From positions 682,001 through 746,000 of the forward strand of contig OX337238.1 in the NCBI GenBank assembly GCA_946965045.2: a stretch of DNA of 64,000 nt. Direction: 5' to 3'. A program made the translations under genes and the position numbers. Source of the DNA: Epithemia pelagica (lineage: Eukaryota > Protista > Bacillariophyta). Numbering within the stretch: position 1 is the stretch's first letter; each line of letters opens with the position of its first letter. The notes below the pieces were generated by a model. It saw only the letters and a program-made list of their open reading frames with translations. It was not told the origin of the DNA and ran no database searches. Positions 6,576 to 21,984 of this stretch are shown here, piece after piece.

Positions 6576-8105
6576 TTACCCATATGCTTTCTGCCCCAGC
6601 TGTAGGATGGACAAGATCGCTCCCAAAACAGCACCCAAAAAGATGATCAACGGAGACGGCAGATTGTTGGAAAACGATACAAGGCTCGAAGTGAAAACCA
6701 GCACAATCGAGTCAGCGCCTCTCTTGATGGAACTGGAGTAAATATTGACGCATGCGGATCCAATCAATCCAATCGCGGCTGCATTCACGCCGCGGAGAAT
6801 CTTACGGAAACTGGCCGAGTGTCTGAGCTGCGACCAAAATGGCAAGGCCGCCACCAGGAGAATAAAGCCAGGGGAGAACAGGCCCAGATTGGCCGCCAGA
6901 GCGCCTTTCCAACCCGCTTGAAGGGCACCGAGATAAGCGGAAAAATTAAAGAATGGCCCCGGCAACGACTGCGTCAAGCCGACCCCGTTGTAGAAAAGAT
7001 CTCCTGGAATCGTCTCCGGAACCAGCTCCGCTGCAAGCAACGGTACAATGACAGGGCCACCGCCAAAAATTATGGAGCCAGTTCGAAAGTTGATGGCAAA
7101 CAAGCGGAAAAGTGGACTTGTGAATGGTAGAAACGATGCTACCAGAAACAGCACGATCCATATTCCAAACGCCAAGGCACCAGTCCAAAGAGGTAGATGA
7201 TCGAGCATGTTTTGTGGCGGCGCTGTTTGTTTTGTTTTTTGCAGAGCACTGGATTTGGAAGAAGACAATGACGTACGAGTAGCATCTTTCTGCTTTGCCA
7301 GAAGCGTCGCCATACCAGCCATTGCCAACAAGGACGGGTACACAAACTGGGCACTCGTTCGGGGTATTCTCAAGTCCGAGTTGATCAAGATCGCAACCAT
7401 ACAACTGATTGTTGCCAGTACTTGCTGAAGAGAATCCAACGTGTTGACGAATTTGTATCCAGCTTTGAGTGTCAAAGCCAGAGCAGCGGGGGGAATGCCT
7501 CGCATCCAAAACGGAGAACTTTTCCCTTGGTGTTGAACCAGTGCGACTCCTGCCAAGGAGAGGAGTGAAGCACTTGGTACACACCAACAGATCCAGGCCA
7601 CGACACCTCCAAGAATGCCTGCATGCGAAATCGCCGTTGCTATTACCAGTTGCGTGGAGGACGGTCCAGGAAGTCCCTGTGCGACAGAAAACAATTCGAG
7701 AAAAACTTCTTCCGTTAACCACTTCTTTTGAACTGTCAAAACTTCACGTAGAAGGGCCACGTGAGCCGGTGGTCCACCAAAAGATATCAGTCCAAGATAC
7801 CAATATTCTTTCACAACTTCCCACACTCTTTTCGTGGTACTTGTTGACGATAAGAAATGCTCATTACCACCACGAACCAGAAGAGTATCTTTCTCATGAC
7901 AATACTTGTCGTCGGGATCTTTGCTTGTTTCACTTGACGAACCAGATGTAGACTGATCAGTCAGCGATGCCTTTTGATTTCGAGGTCTGAGAGTGGTACT
8001 TTGTCGAGACGATGGCATTGTTTCTAATAACATAGGACGGGCCTCGATACCATGAAGCTGCATTGTCAAGGCGAAGGAAGCAACCGTTCCTAGAAAAGAT
8101 CGCAT
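6576..8105 (-). CDS. chrA: Chromate ion transporter (CHR, long-chain ChrA family), ~509 aa
   Basis: Duplicated CHR motifs LGLISFGGPPAH / AQGLPGPSSTQ and GSIIFGGGPVIVP / TQSLPGPFFNFSAYLG. First true ATG is 8105; the ORF-track start at 8309 is a GTG inside the adjacent element. Confidence 0.9.
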   Translation of the reverse strand: MRSFLGTVASFALTMQLHGIEARPMLLETMPSSRQSTTLRPRNQKASLTDQSTSGSSSETSKDPDDKYCHEKDTLLVRGGNEHFLSSTSTTKRVWEVVKEYWYLGLISFGGPPAHVALLREVLTVQKKWLTEEVFLELFSVAQGLPGPSSTQLVIATAISHAGILGGVVAWICWCVPSASLLSLAGVALVQHQGKSSPFWMRGIPPAALALTLKAGYKFVNTLDSLQQVLATISCMVAILINSDLRIPRTSAQFVYPSLLAMAGMATLLAKQKDATRTSLSSSKSSALQKTKQTAPPQNMLDHLPLWTGALAFGIWIVLFLVASFLPFTSPLFRLFAINFRTGSIIFGGGPVIVPLLAAELVPETIPGDLFYNGVGLTQSLPGPFFNFSAYLGALQAGWKGALAANLGLFSPGFILLVAALPFWSQLRHSASFRKILRGVNAAAIGLIGSACVNIYSSSIKRGADSIVLVFTSSLVSFSNNLPSPLIIFLGAVLGAILSILQLGQKAYG

Positions 8106-8228
8106 CTTGACACTTGACACCAACCTTGGTCGAGGAGGTCTGTTCACCAGATGGTTCAGCAAGTTCCAGCAGAGAGCGAGGAAGAATACGTGCGCTGAAC
8201 AGAGAGCTCTACAATACCCTAAATTGAA

Positions 8229-8264
8229 ACCGCCAAGGCGGTAAAGGACGGCTGAGTTCAGTAT
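8229..8264 (-). repeat. 3' terminal structure of the rolling-circle element: subterminal inverted repeat (8249-8264) plus GC-rich hairpin (8229-8242)
   Basis: ACCGCC-AA-GGCGGT perfect 6-bp stem lies 8 nt from the A-run at 8221-8223. The subTIR pairs with 20777-20792. Confidence 0.8.
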
Positions 8265-8325
8265 CAGTAGTACAGTGGACAGGACTATTCTATTTATCTT
8301 TGGCAGCACTTCCTAGAAATGAAAG

Positions 8326-11300
8326 TTAATTAAGTCTTTCATCGAGCTGAACCGCGGGTGGCGGACGTTTAGTTGTCCGGAAATGTACATGAAACTCTTT
8401 ACATTCAGCAGACATTCCACGACATTTGTCGGCTATAAGTGGTTTTGCAAGGAAAAGGCCTTTGAGCTGGCAAACTGTCGACAAACAAACATAGTTCCAA
8501 TTGCCCGTGTAGTCCCAGTTCGATATGTAAAGAAATTCGATTGATCTCCCTTGTAGCTTATGAACAGTCCTTGCATTGGACACATTGAGAGGAAGCTGCG
8601 TCATTTTCATCGTTTTCCTCACTCGTTTCATGCCAAACATGGGGAGTGGGAACTGCACTTGTTGAGTAACAGTTTGAGGCTTCAAAAGAACAACATGGTT
8701 CTGGTTTCCATCAACCATTTTCACCTTGATTCCCTCGATTTGAGTGACCTTAAGACTCCAAACATAATATCCATCAATCAATATTTTCTCCAAATCAGTT
8801 AATGTCACCCCTTGCTTAAGGAGAACGCCATTGAATTCACACATGGCTCCATTAGCAATACATGACTCAACGTCTTTGTTTTCATTGATACACAACGGTC
8901 TTCTATAATACAGTTTCAAAAGTGGATCATATCTCTTGTTGTCTCGTCCTTGCAAGTGACCCTCACCACAGGTGGCATATAGGATATCTTCACTTGCCTT
9001 GTTGAAATCAACATAGTCATTTCTTGTTCCCGCTTTTTTCCACTTCAAGTTGGACGCTTTGATACAGATTGTGTGCATGGGAGGGTCAACATTAGGATCT
9101 TTTGAATGGGTATTTTCCAGATGTTTAGCAAAAATGGCATCATTGATTGCTGCTCGATCAAGATTAGTTTTCGTTGCATAAACCACATTTGGAGGAATGT
9201 CTTTCTCTGTTGGTCCATGTTTAGATCCAACAACACGAGTATTGATTGTCGCCACATCACCATTGCTTGGTCCCTCATCTCGAAATGTCTCAAGAATTGT
9301 CCCCCATGGTGGATCAAGGCAAAACCTGTGATTTGTCTTAAGTTCAAGGAATGTGTGTTACCATTTCACAAAGTCCTTAAAAAGGGGCTTTGACTGGTTT
9401 CAGTTGTGTGAAATCACCTGCAAAGACAAGAGCAATTCCACCAAAGGCTGCATCCGGCTGCAATATTTGTCGCAATTTGTGATCAAGAGTATCAACGACT
9501 TCTTTTGAGGCAAATGAAATTTCATCAACGATCAACAGATAAGCATTTTTCCATTGCTCTGGTTCCTCGGTAATTGCTCTGTTTAGTGCACAAGCCATAG
9601 CAGTTGTTTCTCCATTTATCCCAACTGCCGCAGCACCTGTAAGAGCAGTAACGACAATAGTTCTCTTGTCATACCTGATGTGGAGGTTGTAGCACAAATT
9701 TTTGGCGTATCGTACAATTGTTTTGATAACGTGGCTTTTCCCAGACCCCCCTGTTCCTGATAGAAATGCAATGAATTGGTTTCCCCTGTTGACTTTTTGC
9801 AATGTCTTTTGAATGTTGTCAAGTTTCTGTCGTTTCCGTGTAGGCATTGCTTCAGGATTTGTATTTGAATTTCGGTTTGCCTCATCATGCAAACGCAATA
9901 TAAAAGCAGAAATGATTGCTTCGAATGCATAGCGCTGATCCATATCGTCTCTGAAATGGTGGGCTGCATATTCGCGTATATTTTTCAATGTTCCAATCGC
10001 TTTGATATCTTGCTGTCCATCACCAGCTGTAATTCTCTCTGTCCGTGAAATTGCCAATTCATGAAGAGCTGCTTTGGTTACATGATGAGAAAAGGACGTT
10101 TCAGGGGTGGACTCAAGACCCACATGTGAAGCTGAGGTGTCTTCCAGGAGCTGTAGAACATTTCCTGTAAAGCCGTTGTCTTCATCTATAACAGGTGTAA
10201 CAATGTTTTGAATGCCACAGTTTGACGTTCCACATTTGCAAATGATACATGATGGAATCTGATAAATGTTGGTTGGCGACCTCAAGTCAAGTCCTGTCTC
10301 ATTCATGTCATTGACCGTCTCAATAAGCTCCTCAAAGGCACTGTCAAAATCTTTGTGAAGAGCACTATCCTCATCATTTTCATTATCATATTCATCATGG
10401 ACACAACAGTTGTCAGTTGGCTTTTGTGTTTCTTTTTCCAGAGGATCCACTGGTCTTCCAGAATTTAGACTGTTCCGACAATCTTGAATATTAGCAAGAA
10501 TTTGCCAATGCTCAGCTGTGATCATTCCACTCCGAAGTGCTGCTTGGAAACATTTAACAAATGAACCATCCTTTGTCAAATCTCCTGGAAAGGATCTGAA
10601 TGAATGGAACAAGATGTTTGCTTTTTTTGCATAAAGTTCCATGTAATGATGTTCCTCGTGCAAGATATCATCCGGCATTTCTTCTGTTTCAATGTTTCAA
10701 TTCCCAAAATATTTGGTGTCAACAAAATCTTTGTAAGTCACAAGTGGTATCTTTGTATGTTTTGCGGCTGTTACACCAAGATGGTCTTTTGAAGGGTGTT
10801 CCTTGATCCATTCCAAGCTTTTTGATGTTTTCCTGGTCACTGTGAAGTTGGACAGAAAATCATACAAACAAACATCTTCAAGTTCTTCTGGGCGGAACAA
10901 GTAATTTGCAACATCTGACGTCAGAAAGGTGTTTCCATCAATCGAATCAAGGGACAAATCTTGCAAGGTTGCTTTTTCAAAATTTTTGAGATTCACATAT
11001 GCAAAATCATGTGAATAACGAAACCTTGAGCCATTATTTCGCACCAAGTAAGAAGCCATCGGTGCACGCATATATGTGCAGAAGTGGACAGCAACATTGC
11101 CCCAATTAATGCCCTCATTCCAGAAGTTTCACGGTCTTGCTCAACTGTCTCAATTTCTGTCGAATTGGTAGTCTGCTCAAGTTCAAGCAATCTTTCCCGC
11201 ATTTTTCGTATCATTTGTTTAGCTGCATTTGTAAACAGTGAACTGTCTTCTTCTTGAGTATTCTTAGAAATGTAACATGTCATATACATGACACTTCCTC

Positions 11301-14130
11301 CGTCAACAGCTGTCACAACATTAGTATTGCAACCAAAAATTTGGCTTGCATGACAATTGTGAATATTGACAAATGCATCATGGTGTTTTCAATTTGCTTT
11401 CAGTGTGAACAAGTGTCTGGATTGATCATTGCCTTTCCAATCAAACCACTTTGTTGAATCTTCCGAAAACTTCAACTCTGTTTTTTTGCACTCTGCACAC
11501 GGAATATGCATACGACACTCGTCTCCTTTCTTGAAACAAGAAATAGCATGTTTTGAGCGATGCAAATTGCGTAATACTGTCAGAACAAAGGTGCCATCAG
11601 TTGTCATTCTCTTGGGATGTAAGATCTGCTGACGCATCAGGAACAATTCCATTGAATTTGTGAGTGGAACATTGAAGGATGAAGCTTGTGCCATTGGGTC
11701 ATTCTGTGGTTGTTGTTCTTGAAAAGCCATGGCTGGGAGAATGTTTTTCAATCTGGAAAGAACAAGAGCTTCACTTGTCATTGCTGTGTTGCAGTTTGCG
11801 CATCTGACAATTGATTTCCCACCAAGGGATGTTACACCAATCTTTGTTCGCAAATTCCGAATGTCTTGTTTGGAACATGGGTGGAAGGCACGTGAGACAC
11901 AAGCATCATTTACACAAGGCGGAATAGTCTCGCCATGCATATGTGTGCTCATGACCTTTGATGCATAGTCAACTAAGAGCTTCGAAAAGTGTTCTCTTGT
12001 TGCCTGATTGGCAAGTCCTTTCAATAACTTTGACCACTTTAACAACCATAAGAGAAAATGATCATGAAGCGTTTTTCTTCCTTGCTCCTCAACTGCATCA
12101 CACCACGCAAGCAAATCACCAAATAAACCTTCATCAATTTTGTTCATTCTCTTTTTCATATCCCAGCCAAGGAGATGCTCAATCGTTATTGCAATCACAT
12201 TTTCAAAGTCAATACCACACATTCCCGGGTGAATCTGTCTAATGCGAGCACAGTCAAGGATGAATTCTTGTTGATCCAAAGTTGAAGTTGTAGCTGGGTT
12301 AGGTGGAATTGCTTCACCAACCTTTTTGTTCACCATTACACGCAGTCTGAAATTTACGGCATCTTCTGGTGTAATTGTAAACATCACACTTGGCAAACCA
12401 AATTTTGCAATCATTGCTAGCATATTTTGTTGTGCTTTTCTGGCAGCTCCTGCAGTGTGTCCCATAGAAGATGCGACAGCTTTCATCTTTCTCAAAAACT
12501 GGTCACTAGGACCTGATCCCTGGGCATTTTCAAGATGGCGCTTGATGGCATCTTGAATCTGTTCGTTAGTGATTGTAGCAAATGATTCTGCTTGTGTATC
12601 ACTGGTTTGCAAATATGAATTTGAGACCATTCTTTGACGCTCAAACATATTGTGTACGACACATACAAAATCAGCATGGTGAAAAAAATTGCTTGAGTGT
12701 CGCATCAGATGCCCAAAGTAACTCATTCCGACATGGGGATTTCCATCTTTATCATTGGCACCAATCCCATAAGGAAACTGTAAAGGAAATGCCTTCAGGA
12801 GATTAGAACCTTGATAGTCTTTCAACAAGGTTTTCGAAGGTCTTGAAATCAATGTTGCATCTTTATTGTCATGGTCTACCAAAAGACGATCAAGCGTCAT
12901 TTGCATGAAATCATCCTGGGAGGAGAACCCTCCATTTTTCTGCTGAGGTTCATCAGAATCAGGGAAGACCGCCGTGATTTCAAAAACTTGCTCAACATTG
13001 GACGTTGAGGCAGGTGCGTCATCACTTTTGTCAATGACAATTGGTTTTACAAGATGTTCTGGTGGCAAATCAAAGTCATGGTACAAATGATTGTGTTGTT
13101 TCAACCATTGTAGCGCTTTTTTGACCAAATTCCATCGAACGTTTGTGCGCTGACGAGTCAAAGCTTTCTGTGTAGGTGTGAAAGGACCTGTTAAAACAAC
13201 AGCAATTTGAGGCAGAAGAGGCGATTCATTGCTATTAAGTGGCGGTTGATCTGTGTCATCATTTTCATTCATATTGTCGCTGATGCCACTATTATTGTCT
13301 TGAATGTCATTTCCAACATCACTGACATTGTCATCATCACTATCATCCATGTCGTGATCAAAAAGTTCTGTCCATCGAGCAGCAATGTCTTGGCCAGTAT
13401 GTTCACATTGTTGTTCGCCATGATTAGGAAGTGCACTGTCAGCTTGTCCTGTTGCTGACAGACACCAATTTATAACCCCATTGACAGCTTTGAGGTCATT
13501 GTAATACAAGGAGTGCCAACCCTTAATTGATTTATGTGATCCTGCCGTGAATGAAAAAACGTGTTTGTTTGTCCTCGCCGGCAAAATGAGTGCGAGTTCG
13601 ACCTCATTCAGCCATTGATGATAGCATTTTTGGGAAGTTTATCAGGGTCACTGTTCCTTTTTTTCATGTAAATGATGCAATGGTAACATTCTGAGCAACA
13701 TCCAAATCCTTCAGATTGTCCCTTTTTGATTGCATAAGAGGACGGTGAAAGAACCAAGCTTTGCAGCGGACGATACTTTCTGTTGGAATGAGAGGAATCG
13801 TAACACGTTTGTGTGTAATGTTTCTTGATCTGTTTCTGGCTCTCTAGTCCGGTACCATAGTGTGAAAAGTCAAGATTAGACTTCATGAATTTTGGTTTTA
13901 TTTTCTCATGAAGAATATCATCAATCTTCATCTGACCCAACCTTGATGAATTGATCACAGACACAACATACTTTTGGGAAAAACAAGTCTCCTTTCTTAG
14001 TCAATAGAGAATCCCGACTTGCCACTGCTCTGGCTATTCCTTTTTGGATCGAGGTGTCTCTAGCTAACATTTCTTGGTAATGCAGATCTTGCTGGTTACA
14101 ACTGGTGACAACTTAGGCCAAATGAGTATT
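8326..14130 (-). pseudogene. Helitron-family RepHel (HUH Rep + PIF1-type SF1B helicase), multiply disrupted; no C-terminal endonuclease
   Basis: Consecutive minus ORFs give VCCVCDQF, LLKAFPLQFPYG, Rep motifs FTITP, EEQGRKTLHDH and YMTCYISK, and helicase motifs GTGGSGKS, LIVDEISF, GDFTQLKPV, TVHKLQGRSI and YVCLSTV. Lesions: frameshifts ~13920, ~13610, ~11070, ~9380; in-frame TGA at 11389-11391 and 10697-10699; TAA at 9358-9360. Confidence 0.93.
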
Positions 14131-14196
14131 GTGAGAAGAGAAGTCAAAGGTAAGTGACACAGTCAGTAGATAGGTCTTCTACCTAACTGTCACGAA

Positions 14197-14455
14197 CCAA
14201 CTGACAACTACATGTGGTTTCTGTGCTAAGGCAGCTATGCATACTCTTTGGAACATGTGGTTCGTGTATTAACAAGCTCCAAAATTTTTCTGCGACCTAA
14301 CTGGCGATACGAGATTCAGAGGAATGTCTACCAACTGACCTGCATATGGGTTCTGTGCTAACGGAGCTATGCATACTCTCTGTGACATGTGGTTTGTGTA
14401 TTAGGCTGTGAAATTGTTCTGCGACCAAACTGTTGATCCGAGATTCCAAGGAATT
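14197..14455. repeat. Degenerate ~130-bp tandem duplication at the 5' end of the RepHel region
   Basis: Blocks CCAACTGAC, CTGTGCTAA, GCTATGCATACTCT, ACATGTGGTT, CTGCGACC and GAGATTC recur at 129-134 bp spacing. Confidence 0.8.
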
Positions 14456-14672
14456 AGTTTCATTGGATCACTTTTGAATGATCGCAATATTTCCTTACTT
14501 ATCATTTGCGCTCAATTCATTCGATTGCATGGAATCTGAACTTTGTGGCACCACCACCATAGCATTAGGTTAATTTGAATGTGCTGCAGAAAAGAACGAA
14601 ATGATGTAGGAAGTTGTTGTGTTTGTTCGACTTCTGTTATAGTTTTGTCGAAACCTTTGCGAAGAAAGCATA

Positions 14673-15515
14673 ATGCCCCGTCATCGTGTAGGTCTCCGTT
14701 ATCGTGCAGGGTTTTTCCCTCATCCAGGCATGCCTGGTTATCTGGTACGTACTATCATCGAGGCAGGCTGTGCGTTTAAACCTGTTGATTGTATCGTTTA
14801 TTTCAGTGAGCATGATTTTTACATCCGTCTGTGTGTCATCCAAAAGTATTCCAAGGCAATTGATGTGTTGCGATATATCGCAGAAAGGATTCGATCACGA
14901 CTCTGTGATATTCGACTTTGTCAGGAAAATGGGAAACGTATTGCTATGAAGGCTTACGTCTATGACAACGATGATGATCTCATTGACGGGGTTGTTAAAT
15001 TAAGTTTGGTGGAGGAACATCACGAATTTAGCGAACCTGATCTTCCTGAGAATTATGTGCTTTCTTCGTCAACTGAAAATTGCAAACAAGAGAGTGACAA
15101 TGGTGACGACTGGGAAGACGATGAGGATTCTTATGAGAACGACGACTCAGAAGAAGAGGAAGATGAGGAATTCAGTGAGTTGGAGGTCAATCAAGAGGAA
15201 AGCGATTCCTATGAGAACGACGACTCAGAAGAAGAGGAAGATGAGGAATTCAGTGAGTTGGAGGTCAATCAAGAGGAAAGCGATGGAGGCGACGACTGGC
15301 AAGAGCAAGAGGATGACACTGAGGAAGACGATTCAGACGGACAAGATGAAGAGGATGGCTGTTATGGCAATTGGAATGGTGATTCAGATGAGAATGATGA
15401 TTAAGATGAGAATGATGATTCAGAAGAAGAGGAACATGAATACAAGGTTAATGAAGAGAGCGACGAAGGGAGCGACGAGCAAGACGAGGAGGATGATGTG
15501 GAATATATGTTATGA
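14673..15515 (+). pseudogene. Element-internal hypothetical gene: ~120-aa globular N-terminus plus long Asp/Glu tail; premature TAA at 15402-15404
   Basis: ORF 14673-15404. The acidic frame continues after the TAA (DENDDSEEEEHEY...DVEYML) to TGA 15513-15515. The TAA replaces TCA within an 18-bp duplication. Divergent from RepHel. Confidence 0.6.
15126..15281 (+). repeat. 78-bp (26-codon) near-perfect tandem duplication encoding DSYENDDSEEEEDEEFSELEVNQEES x2
   Basis: Units 15126-15203 and 15204-15281 differ at one synonymous position (TCT/TCC). Confidence 0.95.
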
Positions 15516-15730
15516 ACGAGATATGTAAGTATCTTGGTTATTCGTAATACCAAGAGAGTAAAACTAATAGTCTATTGATTGTCTAGCGCAAGCACACATA
15601 CGGTTTGGACTCATGTTATAATGGCAGACGCATGGACGCACAGTCTTAGTATAGTTGCTAGTGTTGTGGAATCGATGAACCAAACGAGAACCATACGTTC
15701 TTGTCTCATCCATGATTTAAAGCTAGTAAC

Positions 15731-17498
15731 GGATCATGGCGGAGTGGGTATTGTCGTGTGACTACTAGCGAATAGCATCCACAGTCTGTTTGGCGGGGTT
15801 CGTGGTGGCGGTTGGTTTGCGATGGCCTTGGCTCCTGGATCGAGAGGAGCTTTCCTCTTACGTACCAGAGGAATTCCCTACTCCGTTTTTGCGTTGCCCC
15901 ACCGACAATACTGATGATATTGACAATGACAAGACTCTGGTTTTTCTTTAAGAGTGGTGCCAAACCAAGGAAGACATTTCTTGGACGATTTCTGCTTGGC
16001 CACTCGTTTCGTGTCTTTCTCGTGTTGTCGTCTTGGTGAATTGGGGCGGTGTTGGTTTTGGCTTGGAGGATCATGGTGGAGTGGGTATTGTCGTGTGATT
16101 ACAGCCAATATTCGTGGTGGCGGTTGGTTTGCAATGGCCCCGGCTGCCGGGTCGAGGGGAGCTTTCCTCTTTTGTATCAGAGGAACCCTACTCCGTTTTT
16201 GCGTTGCCCCACCGACAATACTGTTGATGTTGATAATGGCAAGACTGTGGACGATTGCGAGCATCCTTGGGACGAGGCAACCACAGTGGTAATCGTTGTG
16301 GAACCAGTGTGCCTCGTGACGACGGACGACCAAAGACGGATTCATCCTCATTGCCATCCATTTAATCAAAGTCCAATTCATCTCAAGCCATCAGTTTCTG
16401 GTCCAAGTCCATTCGTTGCTTGGGAGGTGCATCCAAACTTGCTTGTTTTGTTCTGGTTTCTTTCAAGAGTAGTTCCAAACGACTGGTTGTGGTTCCTGTG
16501 GAAGATTGACGAAGAAATTTCTTGGACGGATTCTGCTTTGCCACTCGTTTCGTATCCTTCTCGTGTTGTTGTCTTGGTGAATTGGGCTGGTGCTACTACT
16601 CGTCCTCCTCGTTGGCGTTAGGATAGGCTTGTACCAAAATGCCAATCCAAATGAGCCAAAATGCGTCCATGCGGTTGGATTCCGTACAAACTCATGAATC
16701 GTAGAATGCTTCACGGCCGTTCCTTCACCGTTGTTCGGTAGGAGTGGATACTTCCGAACTAAAGTTCCGCCTCTGTCGTGCTCACCAAATTTACGATAAA
16801 GAGAAGCGCCTCCTTACACGAACGAAAGAAATGCAACGAACGTTCGCCATGGGAGCACTTTTTGCGCGCCCATGATGTTGGTCGTCGTTGGGTGTTGGGT
16901 GTGATCGTTGGCTACGTTGATGGGCCCTCGTTTCGTTCACAATCCCTCCAACAAGATGGAGTGCTCTGATTTCCAACGATTGGTATCTCTGTGTTGCTGT
17001 GCAGTCGCTCTCTCGATCTCTTGGTCGAACAGAAGTCAACCAACCTCTGACTGAGCTATCGACGTCTCTCGTGTTCGTGTGCAAAGTCCAACAGCCAACA
17101 GCCATCACACAAGATCCTTGTCTGTCCTTGTTCACGCTTCACCTGCACTGGCGGTGTCAAAGTTGTTGTCAAACGTCGAACCGCCTCTCTTGCCATAAAT
17201 CTTTATCTTCCAAGATCCCACTATTATCATCACCATCATGTTCAAGGCCTGTAAGCTGCACAAAACTCGACCGATGATTGATCCATTCCAAAGCAGAGCT
17301 GACACAACAAATTTCGTTTCTCCGAGTTGGCCAAGGGAAACAAACCAGACATGTGCACAGTGCACTTTCCTCATTGTGATCATCCTCGTGCTTACAAACG
17401 AGATCATCCCGACAAAAAGGTGACCAATGGAGTATTTTCTTGTCCAGAAGCCGTCGAAATTTTATTCCTTCTCCCTTTGCCCTCATTGTGCGAGCCAT
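15731..17498 (-). other. Mosaic direct repeats and probable degenerate minus-strand ORF inside the element
   Basis: Block A at 15731-15936 and 16068-16246; block B at 15976-16051 and 16517-16592. B copies differ by synonymous changes (AAA/AAG, GAC/GAT, GCC/GCA) in the minus frame HEKDTKRVAKQ. An ATG-initiated Cys/His-rich ORF lies at 17169-17498. Many stops, so coding status is uncertain. Confidence 0.45.
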
Positions 17499-17593
17499 GG
17501 TAAATTCTGGGGAAGGGCGTGATTGGGCTCATTACCAGAGTGCAAGATGCTCATATCCATCGACGAGAGTAGTTACGATCGTGTGTGTCTACA

Positions 17594-18164
17594 GAGCCTG
17601 CTTTCATTGGCGGGAAAGTGATACTCCTATGTGCATCTGAATCTTAGAATGTAGAGAGCCCGCCAACAAGAAAGAGTACTCTGAGACCATAGACAAGAGC
17701 CAAAACAAGTAAGAGTAGTATCGGTCTGTTGGGTCCTAGTTCGAAAGCGGAAGTTCCCTTAATAGAGGAAATTTCGTGTGCGTCTGCGGAGCCTGCTTTC
17801 ATTGGCGGGAAAGTGATACTCCTATGTGCATGTGAATCTTAAAATGTAGAGAGCCCGCCAACAAGAAAGAGTACTTTGAGACCATAGACAAGAGGGAAAA
17901 CAAGTAAGAGTAGTATCGGTCTGTTGAGTCCTAGTTCAAAAGCGGAAGATCCCTTAATAGAGGAAATTTCTACTCCTATATCCATTTGAATCTTAGCATG
18001 TAGAGAGCCCGCCAACAAGATGGAGTTCTCTGATTTCCATACACAAGAGGCAAACCAGTGAGAGTATTGGTCTGTTGAGTGCTGCTTCCAAGGCCAAACA
18101 TCCCGTAATAGAGGAAATTTATACTCCCATGTGCATTTGAATTACAAATAGCGATGGGAGTATA
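17594..18164. repeat. Degenerate tandem array (periods ~195, ~154, ~151 bp) between two divergent element ORFs
   Basis: GAGCCTGCTTTCATTGGCGGG at 17594 and 17789; TACTCC at 17817, 17971, 18122; shared GAGAGCCCGCCAACAAG and TAATAGAGGAAATTT. Ends in an 11-bp inverted repeat (18120-18130 / 18154-18164). Confidence 0.9.
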
Positions 18165-18316
18165 CCATGAAAACATTTTTCTCGGTTCTTGAACGGTTCC
18201 AATTGGAGAAGTGTTGAGGATCGAGAAAACACGATTTTCTCGATGCAGCCTCATCTCCTCAAGCCAAGTCCAACAATCAACTCATATTTCCTTCCTCGAC
18301 AAACAACATCCGCATC

Positions 18317-19301
18317 ATGACTCCACCAGCGAAAAAGGCAAGTTTGATTGTTGCGTCGTTCTATCACTACATGGCATTCATCCATGCTCACCTTTCTTTT
18401 TTCTTCTCCTCACCAGGAAACAATCAAGAAGTTCAAGTTCACGGCAACAAAGAAGAAAGGTGTTGCTCCTTCTCCGAGTAGATCGAAGCCCAGGGTCTCT
18501 GAGATCCATTCGGAACGTTGTGGCCCTAACTCACAGTTTATTGTTGCTTACATGAAGCTCGCAGGGACCAAAACAGAGCGGTCGGGATACATGAATCCTG
18601 TATTTGATCTGATTAAAGAAAAGGAAAAGTGCCTTTTTGATGAGTTTGATGTGCGAATTCAAAAACTGTATCGTCGTCTCTCACCTGAGAAGGATGAACC
18701 GATGATGAATGGCAACCCGGACAAGTCCGGAACCGAATACCCCTGGCCGTGCGTTGTTGGATTCTGTGACGACGCTGACAATGACACAAAGAAAAAGACT
18801 CTGACCAAAAATTTGTGTAAGACCATTGCCGAGGTGATGGAGAAGAATGACAAAGAACACGGATACAATCGCACTTACAGCTACAACACTCCTGACTTGG
18901 ATCACACCGGCAATATTCCTCGCCCTTTGGATAATCTGTTTCAAGATGAAGAAGTCAATGCTCTTGTTCAAAACTACTTCGAACTCGGTGATGACAATGA
19001 TCTGTTCACCTATCTTGGTGGCGAAGACGATGGTGTGGCAGACCAGGCTTTTTCGCGTGATGAATACGGCATGTACTCCAGAAGTGCAGTGAATCGCTGG
19101 AAATACCCGACTGGTAGGCTCCAAGACAACAAAGTCGACGAGAAGGAGTCCGAAGAAACGACCCCTGAGAATTGGAACACCGCGAAATTGCGTTTTGCGT
19201 TCTGGGTCGAGAATTGGATGGCAAATGGCAAACCAAAATCCCAAATCATCCAACCCACCGTGATGTGGAACCAAACTGCTAAGCTAGCTAGAATAAGATA
19301 A
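18317..19301 (+). CDS. Intact hypothetical protein inside the element; join(18317..18337,18417..19301), 301 aa, GC-AG intron
   Basis: ATG ACT CCA CCA GCG AAA AAG|GCAAGT ... polypyrimidine tract ...CACCAG|GAA ACA joins in frame to an 885-nt open exon. Lys-rich NLS-like N-terminus. No family recognised. Confidence 0.7.
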
Positions 19302-19558
19302 TAGAAGCTATCAAGATTACGATTGAGTGTGATCCATGTTCATTGATTTAGGGCAATGTTATTCTTTATCTACGTAGCTAATTGTGATCGGTGTGCATCC
19401 TCAATCCTCAGCCCTTCGTGTGCTATGCACTGCTATTTGACACAACAAACCAATGCACTGATAGAATGAAAAAATGAGATGGAGACAAACGACACACACA
19501 CAACATAGGATTAGCTACGATGAAGCTAGCCAAATAATGAGGATAAGCTGAAAACTCA

Positions 19559-19819
19559 AAACGGCAGATTGGAGCTAAACGGCAGATCGGAGCTAAACGG
19601 CAGATCGGAGCTAAACGGCAGATCGGAGCTAAACGGCAGAAAGGCGCTAAACGGAAGGAGCTACGAGAAAACACGTAGGATTTTGTACTAGGAGGCGTTA
19701 AACGGCAGAAAGGCGCTAAACGGCAGAAAGGCGCTAAACGGCAGATCGGAGCTAAACGGCATATCGGAGCTAAACGGCAGATCAGAGCTAATCGGCAGAT
19801 CAGAGCTAAGCGGTAGAGC
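19559..19819. repeat. 18-bp minisatellite (AAACGGCAGATCGGAGCT / AAACGGCAGAAAGGCGCT): 11 full plus 2 partial units in two blocks around a 37-bp spacer
   Basis: Units start at 19559, 19577, 19595, 19613, 19631, (19649 partial), spacer 19663-19699, then 19700, 19718, 19736, 19754, 19772, 19790. Confidence 0.95.
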
Positions 19820-19829
19820 ACGTAGTAAG

Positions 19830-20040
19830 TAGGACTGATCCATGACCATTTAATATCCCGGTTTGAATTTTTAGCTTGAGCCTTCTTAGCAATGATTCTG
19901 TCTTCTTTATGTGCTGATCCCCGAGTCGCTCACACCAACTCTATGTCTTGGGTCTTGAACAAATTTTTAAACTCGGTAGCTACTAGTTCTGCGACTCAAT
20001 CTGATTCGGTTGCTAATGAATGTTCTAGTTGTCTATTTGG
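19830..20040 (-). pseudogene. Possible further accessory-gene remnant inside the element
   Basis: Minus frame reads HPNRQLEHSLATESD*VAELVATEFKNLFKTQDIELV*ATRGSAHKEDRIIAKKAQAKNSNRDIKW. Protein-like composition with two TGA interruptions; no homology recognised. Confidence 0.35.
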
Positions 20041-20570
20041 ATGCTAATTGATTGTATCTATAGAGGTCAACAGTTTAAGCTACAGTTCTACCTGTTACGA
20101 GCCACTGCTACGAGTGTCATCTTGTCGACGTTGCGGACCATCAGGATCAGGCGCAAAAGGCAATTTCGCGATGTTCCATTGAGCGATTGTGATATGTGTA
20201 CTGAAATACAATATGAGTGCCAATCGAGAGATATAAGGGCTTCTGCTTTTATCGTATACCAATATGCTATTATCAATACCACATGCATCCTGGTCAGCAG
20301 AACGAACGAAGAAAAACAAAATTCATAATATATGCTTTCCTAGTCAATTTATAATTCTTTGTTGCTGTATGATGATAATATGAATTTAACTCTGCCGTTG
20401 TAGCGATTCATGCCCGTTATCGAACACAGCAATTCTCTCTAACGTCTTGCTACCTGTTCCTACGAGCTTTCAAACAAAAAGTCTTGTTTCAGTCATTCCA
20501 GAACGGTTGGGCGTCTTACATTACTAGTAGAGATTCGTCAAGGGTAAGTCCCCACTCACATTTTACGCGG

Positions 20571-20588
20571 TTGGAGGTGCACCTCCAA
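20571..20588. repeat. Perfect 18-bp palindrome TTGGAGGTGCACCTCCAA
   Basis: Directly visible, ~200 bp inside the inferred 5' end of the element. Confidence 0.9.
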
Positions 20589-20776
20589 ATCATACCATGA
20601 CTGACCATTAAAATATTCATTGCTATATCATTGCCGTATATATTTAACCGTTTCATCAACCGCCATGTTTGCTCAATTGTACTTTTTACTCTAGTGTCCG
20701 TCCGTTTTCGGAACAGCTGGTCTTTCTGGAAATTCCCACCCCAGACCCCAAGCCTTCCGGCCCACCCGTCCCGTTC

Positions 20777-20794
20777 ATACTGAACTCAGACGAA
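20777..20794 (-). repeat. 5' terminal subTIR of the rolling-circle element, preceded by TT
   Basis: Minus strand reads TT-CGTCTGAGTTCAGTAT-GAAC. The subTIR overlaps a small GTTCA-GTA-TGAAC hairpin and matches 8249-8264 at 15/16. Confidence 0.8.
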
Positions 20795-21080
20795 TAGCGG
20801 AACTTAAGGCCGGAGCATTAAATTCGAGCATTTTTACTACTCCGATAATATTTATCGGACCAAATGTCCTCATTTCGGGCAAAATGGTTCTTATCTTCCG
20901 CAATATAACAAAAGGGTGACCCCTGAAAATTTTCTTATATCTCCCCTTTATTGTTCTAAAAATTCGGGGGGTGACTGTTCGCTTCTCTTTGGAATAGGGG
21001 GTAGGGGATGCATGTGCACCTAAAACACTAGGTAGTGGGAAGTGGGGGTGAAGGGAGCGGCCGGACCTTCCAATTTTGCA

Positions 21081-21135: not shown

Positions 21136-21270
21136 TCACAAGTGGAGTGATTGTATCCCGCCAGCTACCCCAAGCTGACAGGGTTAGCACTAAAACCCAT
21201 TCTCGTATTCCATCACTCAACATTCTCACAATTTCGACAAGATACCAATTCGAAGACCAAACCAGAAACC

Positions 21271-21984
21271 ATGAAGTTCGCCGCCGCCTCCATCGCTCTT
21301 TTCGCTTCTACTGCCTCCGCCTTCAACCTTGGAAAGGCTCCCAAGCAAACTGCTCTTCAGGCCGCCTCCTTGAACGGATGGACCCCCGATGAGAAGGCCT
21401 TTGCCTACGGTCTACCTGGATCTTTGGACCCTGTGCCCGAATTCGACCCCTTGGGCTTTGCCGCCGATGCTGACCTCGACAAGGTCAAGCAATACCGTGA
21501 GGCCGAACTTCAGCACGGACGCGTAGCCATGTTGGCTGTTGTCGGATTCCTTGCCACCGAACAACCCTTTGAATTCCACCCTCTCTTCGAGACCGCCAAC
21601 AAGGACATTGGACCCGCGATCCGTCACTTGGACGAAGTCCGTGCCGTTGCCCCCATCTTCTTCGAGATCCTTGTCGTTGTCATTGGAGCCCTTGAGTTGA
21701 ACCGTGCCCTTGTTGGCTGGATCAAGCCCACTGAAGTCAAGAAGCAAGTGTTGAACGATGATTACTTCCCTGGTGACGTTGGCTTTGATCCCCTTGGTCT
21801 TCGCCCCTCCGACGAGACTGAATTCATTGCCTTGCACACCAAGGAATTGCAAAATGGCCGTCTTGCCATGCTTGGTGCCGCCGGTATTGTTGCCCAAGAA
21901 CTTGTCAACGGAAAGGAGATCTTTGTTAACTTGGGACTTTCCCCCGACAAATTCGACCCCTCCTCCCTCCCTGTCCAATTCTAA
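21271..21984 (+). CDS. LHCX: Light-harvesting complex protein of the LHCX/LI818 clade (Lhcx4-like), 237 aa, plastid-targeted
   Basis: Signal peptide with TASAF motif; FDPLGF, REAELQHGRVAMLA, GPAIRHL, PGDVGFDPLGL, KELQNGRLAML. The C-terminal extension FVNLGL..DKFDPSSLPVQF resembles Lhcx4-type proteins as recalled. Confidence 0.92.
   Translation: MKFAAASIALFASTASAFNLGKAPKQTALQAASLNGWTPDEKAFAYGLPGSLDPVPEFDPLGFAADADLDKVKQYREAELQHGRVAMLAVVGFLATEQPFEFHPLFETANKDIGPAIRHLDEVRAVAPIFFEILVVVIGALELNRALVGWIKPTEVKKQVLNDDYFPGDVGFDPLGLRPSDETEFIALHTKELQNGRLAMLGAAGIVAQELVNGKEIFVNLGLSPDKFDPSSLPVQF

Follow-up and report, generated by a model that had tools for sequence, protein, structure and literature searches.

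A probable endonuclease-less Helitron2-type transposon with two accessory genes in the diatom Epithemia pelagica

A 64,000-nucleotide stretch of the diatom Epithemia pelagica (contig OX337238.1 of assembly GCA_946965045.2, forward-strand positions 682,001 to 746,000; hereafter, the window) was found to contain, at approximately positions 8224 to 20794 and in minus orientation, what is very probably a full-length, inactivated rolling-circle transposon of the HLE2/Helitron2 type (HLE, Helitron-like element) that lacks an endonuclease. The whole unit is mobile, with fixed ends and no target-site duplication (TSD). In addition to the transposase gene RepHel, the element carries two further genes that are inherited with it and are under purifying selection; these are referred to here as open reading frame A (ORF-A) and ORF-B.

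Termini, copies and transposase

An earlier annotation made from the sequence alone (the first-pass annotation) had reported a 16-nucleotide (nt) inverted repeat near the two ends of the element, and this repeat was recovered as described: when 20777-20792 (cgtctgagttcagtat) is reverse complemented, it agrees with positions 8249-8264 (cggctgagttcagtat) at 15 of 16 nt, 13 nt of which are perfect. Since RepHel lies on the minus strand, the gene-oriented 5' end of the element is position 20794, and the 5' terminus (20777-20794, minus strand) consists of TT followed by the 16-nt terminal inverted repeat (TIR) CGTCTGAGTTCAGTAT, which is identical in 13 ends of the window's own family (family 1). 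The gene-oriented 3' end, at 8221-8224, is formed by the subterminal inverted repeat (subTIR) ATACTGAACTCAGCCG (8249-8264, minus strand), 7 nt, the GC hairpin CCGCC-TT-GGCGG (8230-8241, minus strand; read in the sequence, 9 nt from the end) and a terminal tail, TTTCAAT(TT) (8221-8229, minus strand), whose last two or three T residues (8221-8223) may belong to the host. Two nucleotides separate the start of the repeat from the 5' end, and the subTIR stops 28 to 30 nt short of the 3' end. With TTCGTC... at one end and ...TTTCAAT(TT) at the other, the element has neither a 5' TC nor a 3' CTRR. When folded as DNA, the hairpin reached -5.7 kcal/mol (z of -2.2), which is modestly better than shuffled sequences.

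Two sister families were compared, namely, a 72%-identical family (family 2) and a family that includes the copy designated L054, from an ENA assembly (family 3). The conserved 5' (left) terminal region (20462-20794, minus strand) is 76% identical in family 2, and its first 65 nt or so are recognizable in L054; family 2 begins with CGTCTAAG... and L054 with TTCGACTGAGTTCAGAAT. The family 2 hairpin has kept its position, with the stem ACCGC/GCGGT and a changed loop. In the C10 copy of family 2, where the 5' TIR is CGTCTAAGTTCAGTAT and the subTIR is ATACTGAACTTAGTCG, a G-to-A change in the TIR is matched by a C-to-T change in the subTIR, and the lone mismatched position stays mismatched. A search of L054 for the family 1 terminal motif gave just a partial subTIR-like match at the 3' end, and the same motif was not found in the metagenome contigs L053, L059 and L060.

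The 60.5-Mb assembly to which the window belongs was searched with window positions 8001-21000 as the query, and 14 fetched copies were included in an alignment of junctions. Many loci begin at window position 8221/8223 and stop at 20794-20796. At least 13 independent 5' ends from family 1 and three from family 2 start at the same base with all flanks different, and the 16 aligned 5' ends all read flank|TTCGTCT(G/A)AGTTCAGTATGAACG. Seven independent 3' ends read ...GGCGGTTTCAAT, followed by TT, CT or CA and then by unrelated flank. No TSD was present in the seven copies with both ends, the flanks of which are unrelated. The recurrence of both ends in other copies and the aligned junctions bore out the first-pass proposals that the element is fully delimited and that it has no TSD. 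The findings that this annotation had named as telling against it, namely, copies with different ends, relatives missing the subTIR and orthologous loci without RepHel in which 14.6-20.8 kb persists as host sequence, did not appear. The exact ends are 8223/8224 and 20793/20794, with one T that is ambiguous between host and element. The base preceding the 5' TT is a purine at 17 of 17 sites, and the base following TTTCAA is T in seven of seven; because the one T can be assigned neither to the host nor to the element, the target is R|T or RT|Y. Both assignments of this T give the empty site that had been predicted for the window insertion (C11:690221-702796), CCCT-AAA-TAGCGG (CCCTAAATAGCGG).

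Window positions 13600-17000 are 98 to 99% identical in other full-length family 1 copies, and five full-length copies share this region (13.6 to 17 kb in window coordinates). Families 2 and 3 follow the same general plan and are of similar length, approximately 12.6 kb. Nonautonomous deletion derivatives retain 0.8 to 3.8 kb at the 3' end and approximately 0.6 kb at the 5' end; positions 16916-19174 are also retained together with both termini. The L054 copy is inserted in a fragment of 28S ribosomal DNA (rDNA) (L054:1-1676 and 14301-15887 were noted) and, as far as sequence comparison indicates, provides a paralogous empty site without duplication: its flanks are contiguous in the rDNA units of the genome as determined by BLAST, and positions 1888|1889 of the Rfam large-subunit (LSU) model abut without duplication. 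Even at this rDNA empty site, one T stays unassignable. When the genome containing the window was searched for this site as an exact pattern, there was no match because the flank is just 95% identical. With respect to other paralogous empty sites, repeated flanks were found in none of the fetched copies. On C8 and C17, the rDNA units, which are arranged in tandem, have no insertion at the L054 site, and the host sequence adjoining the L054 insertion (TCGACTAG) is similar to the 5' end of the element itself (TCGACTGAG).

RepHel (8326-14070, minus strand) is a pseudogene with DUF6570, Helitron_like_N and PIF1 helicase domains and no endonuclease. Pfam placed DUF6570 and Helitron_like_N within 11389-13584 and PIF1 within 9377-10678, with E-values in the window pieces of 4e-17 for PF14214 and 9e-21 for PF05970; the E-value for DUF6570 (PF20209) was 3e-8 in the window, 7e-21 in family 2 and 2e-14 in L054. 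The domain order is identical in family 2 and L054 across approximately 1890 to 1990 amino acids (aa), and both the HUH motif LHDH and the two-tyrosine motif YMTCY (YxxxY) are visible in the translations. No Exo_endo_phos domain (PF03372) was detected by Pfam in the window RepHel pieces, family 2 or L054, and the RepHel reading frame stops about 100 bp short of the element's 3' end with no endonuclease remnant. A PDB sequence search with the RepHel pieces gave no match.

RepHel had been described as a single gene without an apurinic/apyrimidinic (AP) endonuclease. The missing endonuclease was substantiated; the gene, on the other hand, is not intact. One family 2 copy holds RepHel in a single 1988-codon frame with two stops, and since that copy reads as a single frame, the gene is without introns. 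Relative to this frame, with which it is collinear, the window copy changes frame near 13929, 13610, 11085 and 9385 and has stops at 11391, 10699 and 9360; the total is put at approximately four frame breaks and two to four stops, and the copy is dead because of them. Most of the lesions are private to the window copy and comprise 1-bp, 9-bp and 11-bp deletions and CpG-to-TpG changes; private sites are located at 9358-9390, 10697-10727 and 11085. Taken from the sequence, the CpG-to-TpG changes and small deletions fit a silenced copy that is decaying through methylation. Four other family 1 copies have open frames of 1347 to 1841 aa. In family 3, Rep is 47 to 48% identical at the aa level, and frames reach 1983 aa.

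Database relatives of RepHel are DUF6570/Rep/PIF1 proteins of approximately 1900 to 1990 aa from Nitzschia and from metagenomes, and the nearest named relatives are those of the diatom Nitzschia inconspicua. An endonuclease is absent from all of the approximately 45 relatives in this clade and is present only in the very distant protein P0050. In a quick tree that covered the clade plus two endonuclease- or UCH-bearing HLE2-like proteins, the endonuclease- and UCH-bearing proteins stood apart on a long branch.

Following the model for Helraiser and IS91-type HUH transposases, RepHel would nick the top strand at the 5' TT/TIR, its helicase would unwind in the 5'-to-3' direction, the 3' subTIR and hairpin would mark termination, and the single strand would be circularized and then inserted at a T-containing site. 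The covarying TIR and subTIR might either base-pair in single-stranded DNA (ssDNA) or be read twice by one DNA-binding surface, and deletion derivatives would be mobilized in trans.

Two accessory genes and their possible roles

The approximately 6.5 kb upstream of RepHel is a stable part of the element and is inherited with it. In a translated comparison of this region with family 2 and L054, conservation was confined to the termini and to two ORFs, ORF-A and ORF-B. Up to four upstream ORFs had been proposed by the first-pass annotation; two of these are conserved genes, and the remainder are not genes. The accessory module suggested there is likewise inherited (98 to 99% identity in five copies) and holds genes under purifying selection, except that a nested transposon accounts for about 1 kb and repeat DNA for a further part.

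ORF-B (18348-19172, plus strand) belongs to a family of unnamed proteins with a basic N terminus, an alpha/beta core and an acidic tail. Across families 1, 2 and 3 the identity is 100, 55 and 37% at the aa level, with open frames of 268 to 296 aa. For families 1 and 2, the ratio of nonsynonymous to synonymous substitution rates (dN/dS) is 0.18, whereas copies of a single family give approximately 1, the value to be expected if copies are decaying. In family 2, no in-frame ATG is present in the conserved N terminus of ORF-B, and an upstream exon is therefore suggested. When 1.84 billion representative proteins were searched with a profile, only 22 matches were returned, with lengths of 190 to 334 aa, alignable over their full length and all of them metagenome or ENA proteins that are unnamed or labeled "hypothetical." Wherever the contig was long enough, the ORF-B homologue was located 0.6 to 2.2 kb upstream of a DUF6570/Rep/PIF1 gene and divergent from it, a pairing that was seen in five metagenome contig sets (L053, L054, L056-58, L059 and L060). 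In the genome, ORF-B occurs outside the elements as broken fragments only. ORF-B represents a tiny family encountered only beside the RepHel clade, in one genome and several ocean metagenome contigs.

The AlphaFold (AF2) model of ORF-B was confident, with a predicted local distance difference test (pLDDT) score of 86.4 and a predicted template-modeling (pTM) score of 0.80. A whole-model fold search of PDB and of viral models gave no clear match, the best Foldseek E-value of 0.014 being within noise; the fold is possibly new, although the lack of a clear match is no proof of this. A KH domain was considered and rejected, since the best VIA-align Z score of 5.0 was within noise. A word-index protein search recovered ORF-B itself only, a profile search of PDB gave no match, and no OB fold, Pfam match or PDB match was detected in the protein. 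Two distant metagenome relatives, L053:3-6655 and L056:5428-12368, carry ORF-B, RepHel and two large syntenic ORFs without Pfam matches: one of 1040/1502 aa, with 26% identity across approximately 1070 aa, and one of 805/633 aa, with 22% identity. These large ORFs were looked for in the window and are absent from it. Since L053 and L056 combine ORF-B with two more large conserved ORFs, a multigene organization seems typical of the clade.

ORF-A (14673-15404, plus strand) encodes 243 aa. It is 52 to 54% identical at the aa level to an ORF in eight family 3 copies and 59% identical to the L054 homologue; the family 2 counterpart is 32% identical and lies back-to-back with ORF-B. The dN/dS ratio between ORF-A and its L054 homologue is 0.20. 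No Pfam match, no PDB match by sequence or profile and no database relatives were found, a word-index protein search recovered only ORF-A itself, and a hidden Markov model (HMM) search found no further ORF-A-like genes in the window element. An AlphaFold model built from a four-sequence alignment predicts a beta-grasp, ubiquitin-like fold for residues 36 to 115, approximately. The top 50 VIA-align matches to this model were all ubiquitin-like (Z scores of 8.6 to 9.8; root mean square deviation of approximately 2 to 2.5 Å; 73 to 77 residues), and Foldseek matched it to Ufm1, SUMO1, ISG15 and ubiquitin. The confidence of the model, with so few sequences aligned, is low (pLDDT of 52.6), and this counts against the proposed ubiquitin-like identity. 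Past the last strand, the protein continues through ...VKLSLVEEHHEF... into a 120-aa acidic tail, and the C-terminal Gly-Gly needed for conjugation is absent. The tail contains a 78-bp tandem duplication (15126-15284, plus strand; 2.0 copies with a 98% match by Tandem Repeats Finder [TRF]), and window positions 14998-15358 are missing from two sister copies.

Most likely, although this is speculative, ORF-A and ORF-B encode nuclear cofactors of the element. By analogy to replication protein A (RPA) in plant Helitrons, ORF-B may act as a partner of RepHel or of ssDNA, and ORF-A may serve the ubiquitin/SUMO machinery of the host as a decoy or an adaptor, comparable to the OTU and UCH deubiquitinases of other HLE2 elements. 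We put forward tentatively the broader idea that the Helitron2-type clade of diatoms and other marine protists depends on novel element-encoded partners, with ORF-B arranged head-to-head with RepHel and with a nonconjugatable ubiquitin-like protein (Ubl) in the diatom branch. If this is true, such elements would be small multigene systems that manipulate host ubiquitin/SUMO pathways or ssDNA handling. With its predicted ubiquitin-like fold, ORF-A extends the set of ubiquitin-system parts (OTU and UCH) carried by HLE2 elements. Neither a partner like ORF-B nor a ubiquitin-like ORF-A was described in the Helitron literature that was searched.

It is also possible, if doubtful, that ORF-A and ORF-B are not transposition cofactors but rather counterdefense or antisilencing genes, directed, for example, against SUMO- or ubiquitin-dependent chromatin silencing. 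The predicted ubiquitin-like fold of ORF-A without a conjugatable C terminus would suit such a role, as would the OTU/UCH deubiquitinase domains of other HLE2 clades (PMC11417382; the protein P0051 among the RepHel relatives is a deubiquitinase-bearing example) and the private CpG-to-TpG lesions, which are consistent with methylation-based silencing. However, ORF-B has no recognizable fold or motif, and the selection data fit a cofactor role equally well.

Much less probable is the proposal that the element has no use for the 6.5 kb upstream of RepHel and carries it as passive cargo composed of captured host fragments and junk repeats. It is known that host DNA can be captured by Helitrons (PMC11417382), and a large share of the region does consist of a nested transposon, a dispersed 540-bp repeat and tandem arrays; moreover, most of the upstream ORFs show no conservation, and the order and orientation of ORF-A and ORF-B vary between families. 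Nevertheless, both ORFs are open in three families whose RepHel identity is just 47 to 68%, with dN/dS ratios of approximately 0.2, the divergent position of ORF-B beside RepHel is the same in all five metagenome contig sets, and passive capture does not sit well with a genome in which ORF-B outside the elements is found only in broken form. For ORF-A and ORF-B themselves, the passive-cargo proposal is already largely refuted.

Placement among Helitron-like elements

The element is assigned to the endonuclease-less HLE2 type because it lacks both the marks of Helentrons (the endonuclease and the Rep motif RGSPHxH) and those of HLE1 (TC...CTRR). Published HLE2, Helitron2 and HINE elements have subTIRs of 12 to 16 nt, at a distance of 2 to 4 nt from the 5' end and of 20 to 60 nt from the 3' end, together with a palindrome on the 3' side, runs of T at the boundaries that differ from copy to copy and internal tandem repeats (PMC4067079, PMC5148889, PMC11417382). 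The end architecture of the window element is this published layout and is not new in itself; the asymmetric subTIR, GC hairpin and T run, as opposed to TC...CTRR, had been read correctly in the first pass. DUF6570 upstream of Rep is a marker of HLE2 proposed by HELIANO (PMC11417382), and an internal satellite, such as the 176-bp array of family 2, is a trait of Helentrons and HINE (PMC4067079). Deubiquitinase domains of the OTU or UCH type occur in other clades of HLE2 (PMC11417382).

Among known systems, the window element resembles the Helitron2 elements without an endonuclease (Chlamydomonas Helitron2 and Fusarium FoHeli1/2) in its asymmetric TIRs of 12 to 16 nt, the absence of a TSD, a 3' repeat that is set back 20 to 50 nt from the end and precedes a stem-loop and T-rich tail, a RepHel without an AP endonuclease and with an N-terminal DUF6570, and nonautonomous copies derived by deletion. 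It differs in being approximately twice as long (12.6 kb versus 5 to 6 kb), in its stramenopile host, in the absence of a 5' hairpin, in its Rep motif 2 (GRKTLHDH) and in the two extra conserved genes, ORF-A (Ubl) and ORF-B, whereas Helitron2 is described as having a single ORF. As in Helentrons, HINE and DINE-1, the subTIR lies 2 nt from the 5' end and approximately 45 nt from the 3' end, there is a 3' palindrome 9 nt from the end, the boundary T strings vary by copy, and internal tandem or satellite arrays are present (176 bp in family 2); unlike Helentrons, the window element lacks an AP endonuclease, an OTU or RPA gene and RGSPHxH. The proto-Helentron-Pi element of Phytophthora infestans (approximately 14 kb) is likewise large and multigenic, resides in a stramenopile, has a 5' TT and lacks an endonuclease. 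The window element does not share its CTAG 3' end; moreover, the stem-loop is at the 3' end here and at the 5' end there, and the accessory genes of proto-Helentron-Pi encode SET and TIR protein domains rather than a Ubl and ORF-B. A Phytophthora source was identified for none of the 22 ORF-B matches. The RPA-carrying plant Helitrons also combine a transposase with a conserved, separately transcribed accessory protein; however, they belong to HLE1 (5' TC/3' CTRR), and their accessory protein is a recognizable ssDNA-binding RPA, which ORF-B is not.

Several observations weigh against the placement of the window element as an HLE2/Helitron2-type transposon or limit its reach. Rep motif 2 is VEEQGRKTLHDH in the window (and VEEQGRKTLHAH in family 2), which is neither the RGSPHxH of Helentrons nor the RGLPHxH of Helitrons (PMC4067079). 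The HLE2 class was assigned from ends and domains, and the tree covered only the clade and two endonuclease- or UCH-bearing HLE2-like proteins. The hairpin stem is just 5 to 6 bp, with a modest folding energy. The junctions fit R|T or RT|Y and so neither confirm nor exclude the T|T target rule of HLE2. No empty allele of the window insertion was found when JGI metagenome contigs were scanned for the exact pattern. The source of L054 is probably this organism or one very close to it, and L054 therefore does not provide independent support. Lastly, as judged from its reading frame, the window copy cannot be autonomous.

A different origin, as a Helentron that has lost its endonuclease or as a proto-Helentron or HLE1-like form, is very improbable. 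The 5' TT, the stramenopile host and the presence of several genes are features of proto-Helentron-Pi (PMC4067079), and the junctions can be read in one way that yields R|T (A|T-like) as the target. On the other hand, the termini carry no CTAG or CTRR at the 3' end and no TC at the 5' end, and the canonical combination of TIR, 3' subTIR and 3' stem-loop is present. Moreover, the roughly 100 bp between the RepHel stop and the 3' end offers no trace of a lost endonuclease, the entire clade of approximately 1900- to 1990-aa proteins is without one, and the endonuclease- or UCH-bearing proteins fall outside this clade. Least credible of all is the view that several Helitron fragments have come to lie side by side by chance, or in tandem, rather than forming one element, despite the tandem or extra 5' ends seen elsewhere (for example, at C2:6251579-6252485 and as a second 5' end near copy E) and the transposon nested within the element, since at least five copies have the same complete interior between the same two ends and families 2 and 3 are alike in both plan and length.

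In the papers covered by a full-text literature search, diatom Helitron-like elements have barely been described, and the HLE surveys among them make no mention of diatoms or stramenopiles. Because the ends are exactly known, deletion derivatives exist, a sister family carries a satellite and some sister transposases are nearly intact, the locus and its sister copies would make a good starting set for studies of HLE2 transposition in a tractable algal group.

Nested repeats, sister elements and host flanks

A nonautonomous TIR transposon of about 1 kb (a miniature inverted-repeat transposable element [MITE]; 19174-20177) with the TIR GGAACACCGCGAAATTGC and an internal 18-bp minisatellite is nested in the window element. 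It is flanked by a 3-bp TSD, ATT, at 19171-19173 and 20178-20180; 3-bp TSDs were also found at four to five other loci, and the MITE stands alone at many loci. The insertion lies in the C-terminal tail of ORF-B and displaces the last ORF-B residues. Helitron copies B, C and D are without the MITE, with 19174 joined directly to 20178. The MITE family has at least 10 copies at 93 to 95% identity, at loci that include L011, L012, L014 and L017.

Positions 16053-16613 are a copy of a dispersed repeat of approximately 510 to 560 bp that occurs at 76 to 82% identity at no fewer than 12 loci elsewhere. This copy lies within a direct duplication of approximately 540 bp whose units start at 16021 and 16561, and it is not a gene despite its ORFs, which showed no conservation with family 2 or L054 in the translated comparison. 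An internal tandem array of 195/154-bp units (17579-18142; TRF) is kept in deletion derivatives C, D and E.

Three elements of more than 3.5 kb that are 97 to 99% identical to each other (L037, L038 and L039, at G000:C2:6249000-, 5372000- and 1221500-, respectively) have only the 5' 618 bp in common with the window element; directly behind this segment, 290 bp of the 5' end are present again as an additional internal copy. Because their flanks are unrelated, these elements constitute a separate mobile family that uses the same left end. In the family 2 elements L042+L050 (C10), L041+L049, L043+L051 and L044+L052, the 176-bp satellite array follows the RepHel stop and precedes the 3' subTIR; the shortest array measures 2.3 kb, and the longest exceeds 5 kb.

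On the host side, a fucoxanthin-chlorophyll-type light-harvesting gene (21151-21984, plus strand; read from the translation) lies beyond the 5' end of the element and marks the host as a diatom-like alga with chlorophyll c, and a chromate transporter gene (6576-8105, minus strand; Pfam PF02417) lies beyond the 3' end. The likely start ATG of the transporter gene, at 8105 on the minus strand, is 119 bp downstream of the element's 3' end (window 8105-8224), and the insertion may therefore have replaced the promoter region of this gene.

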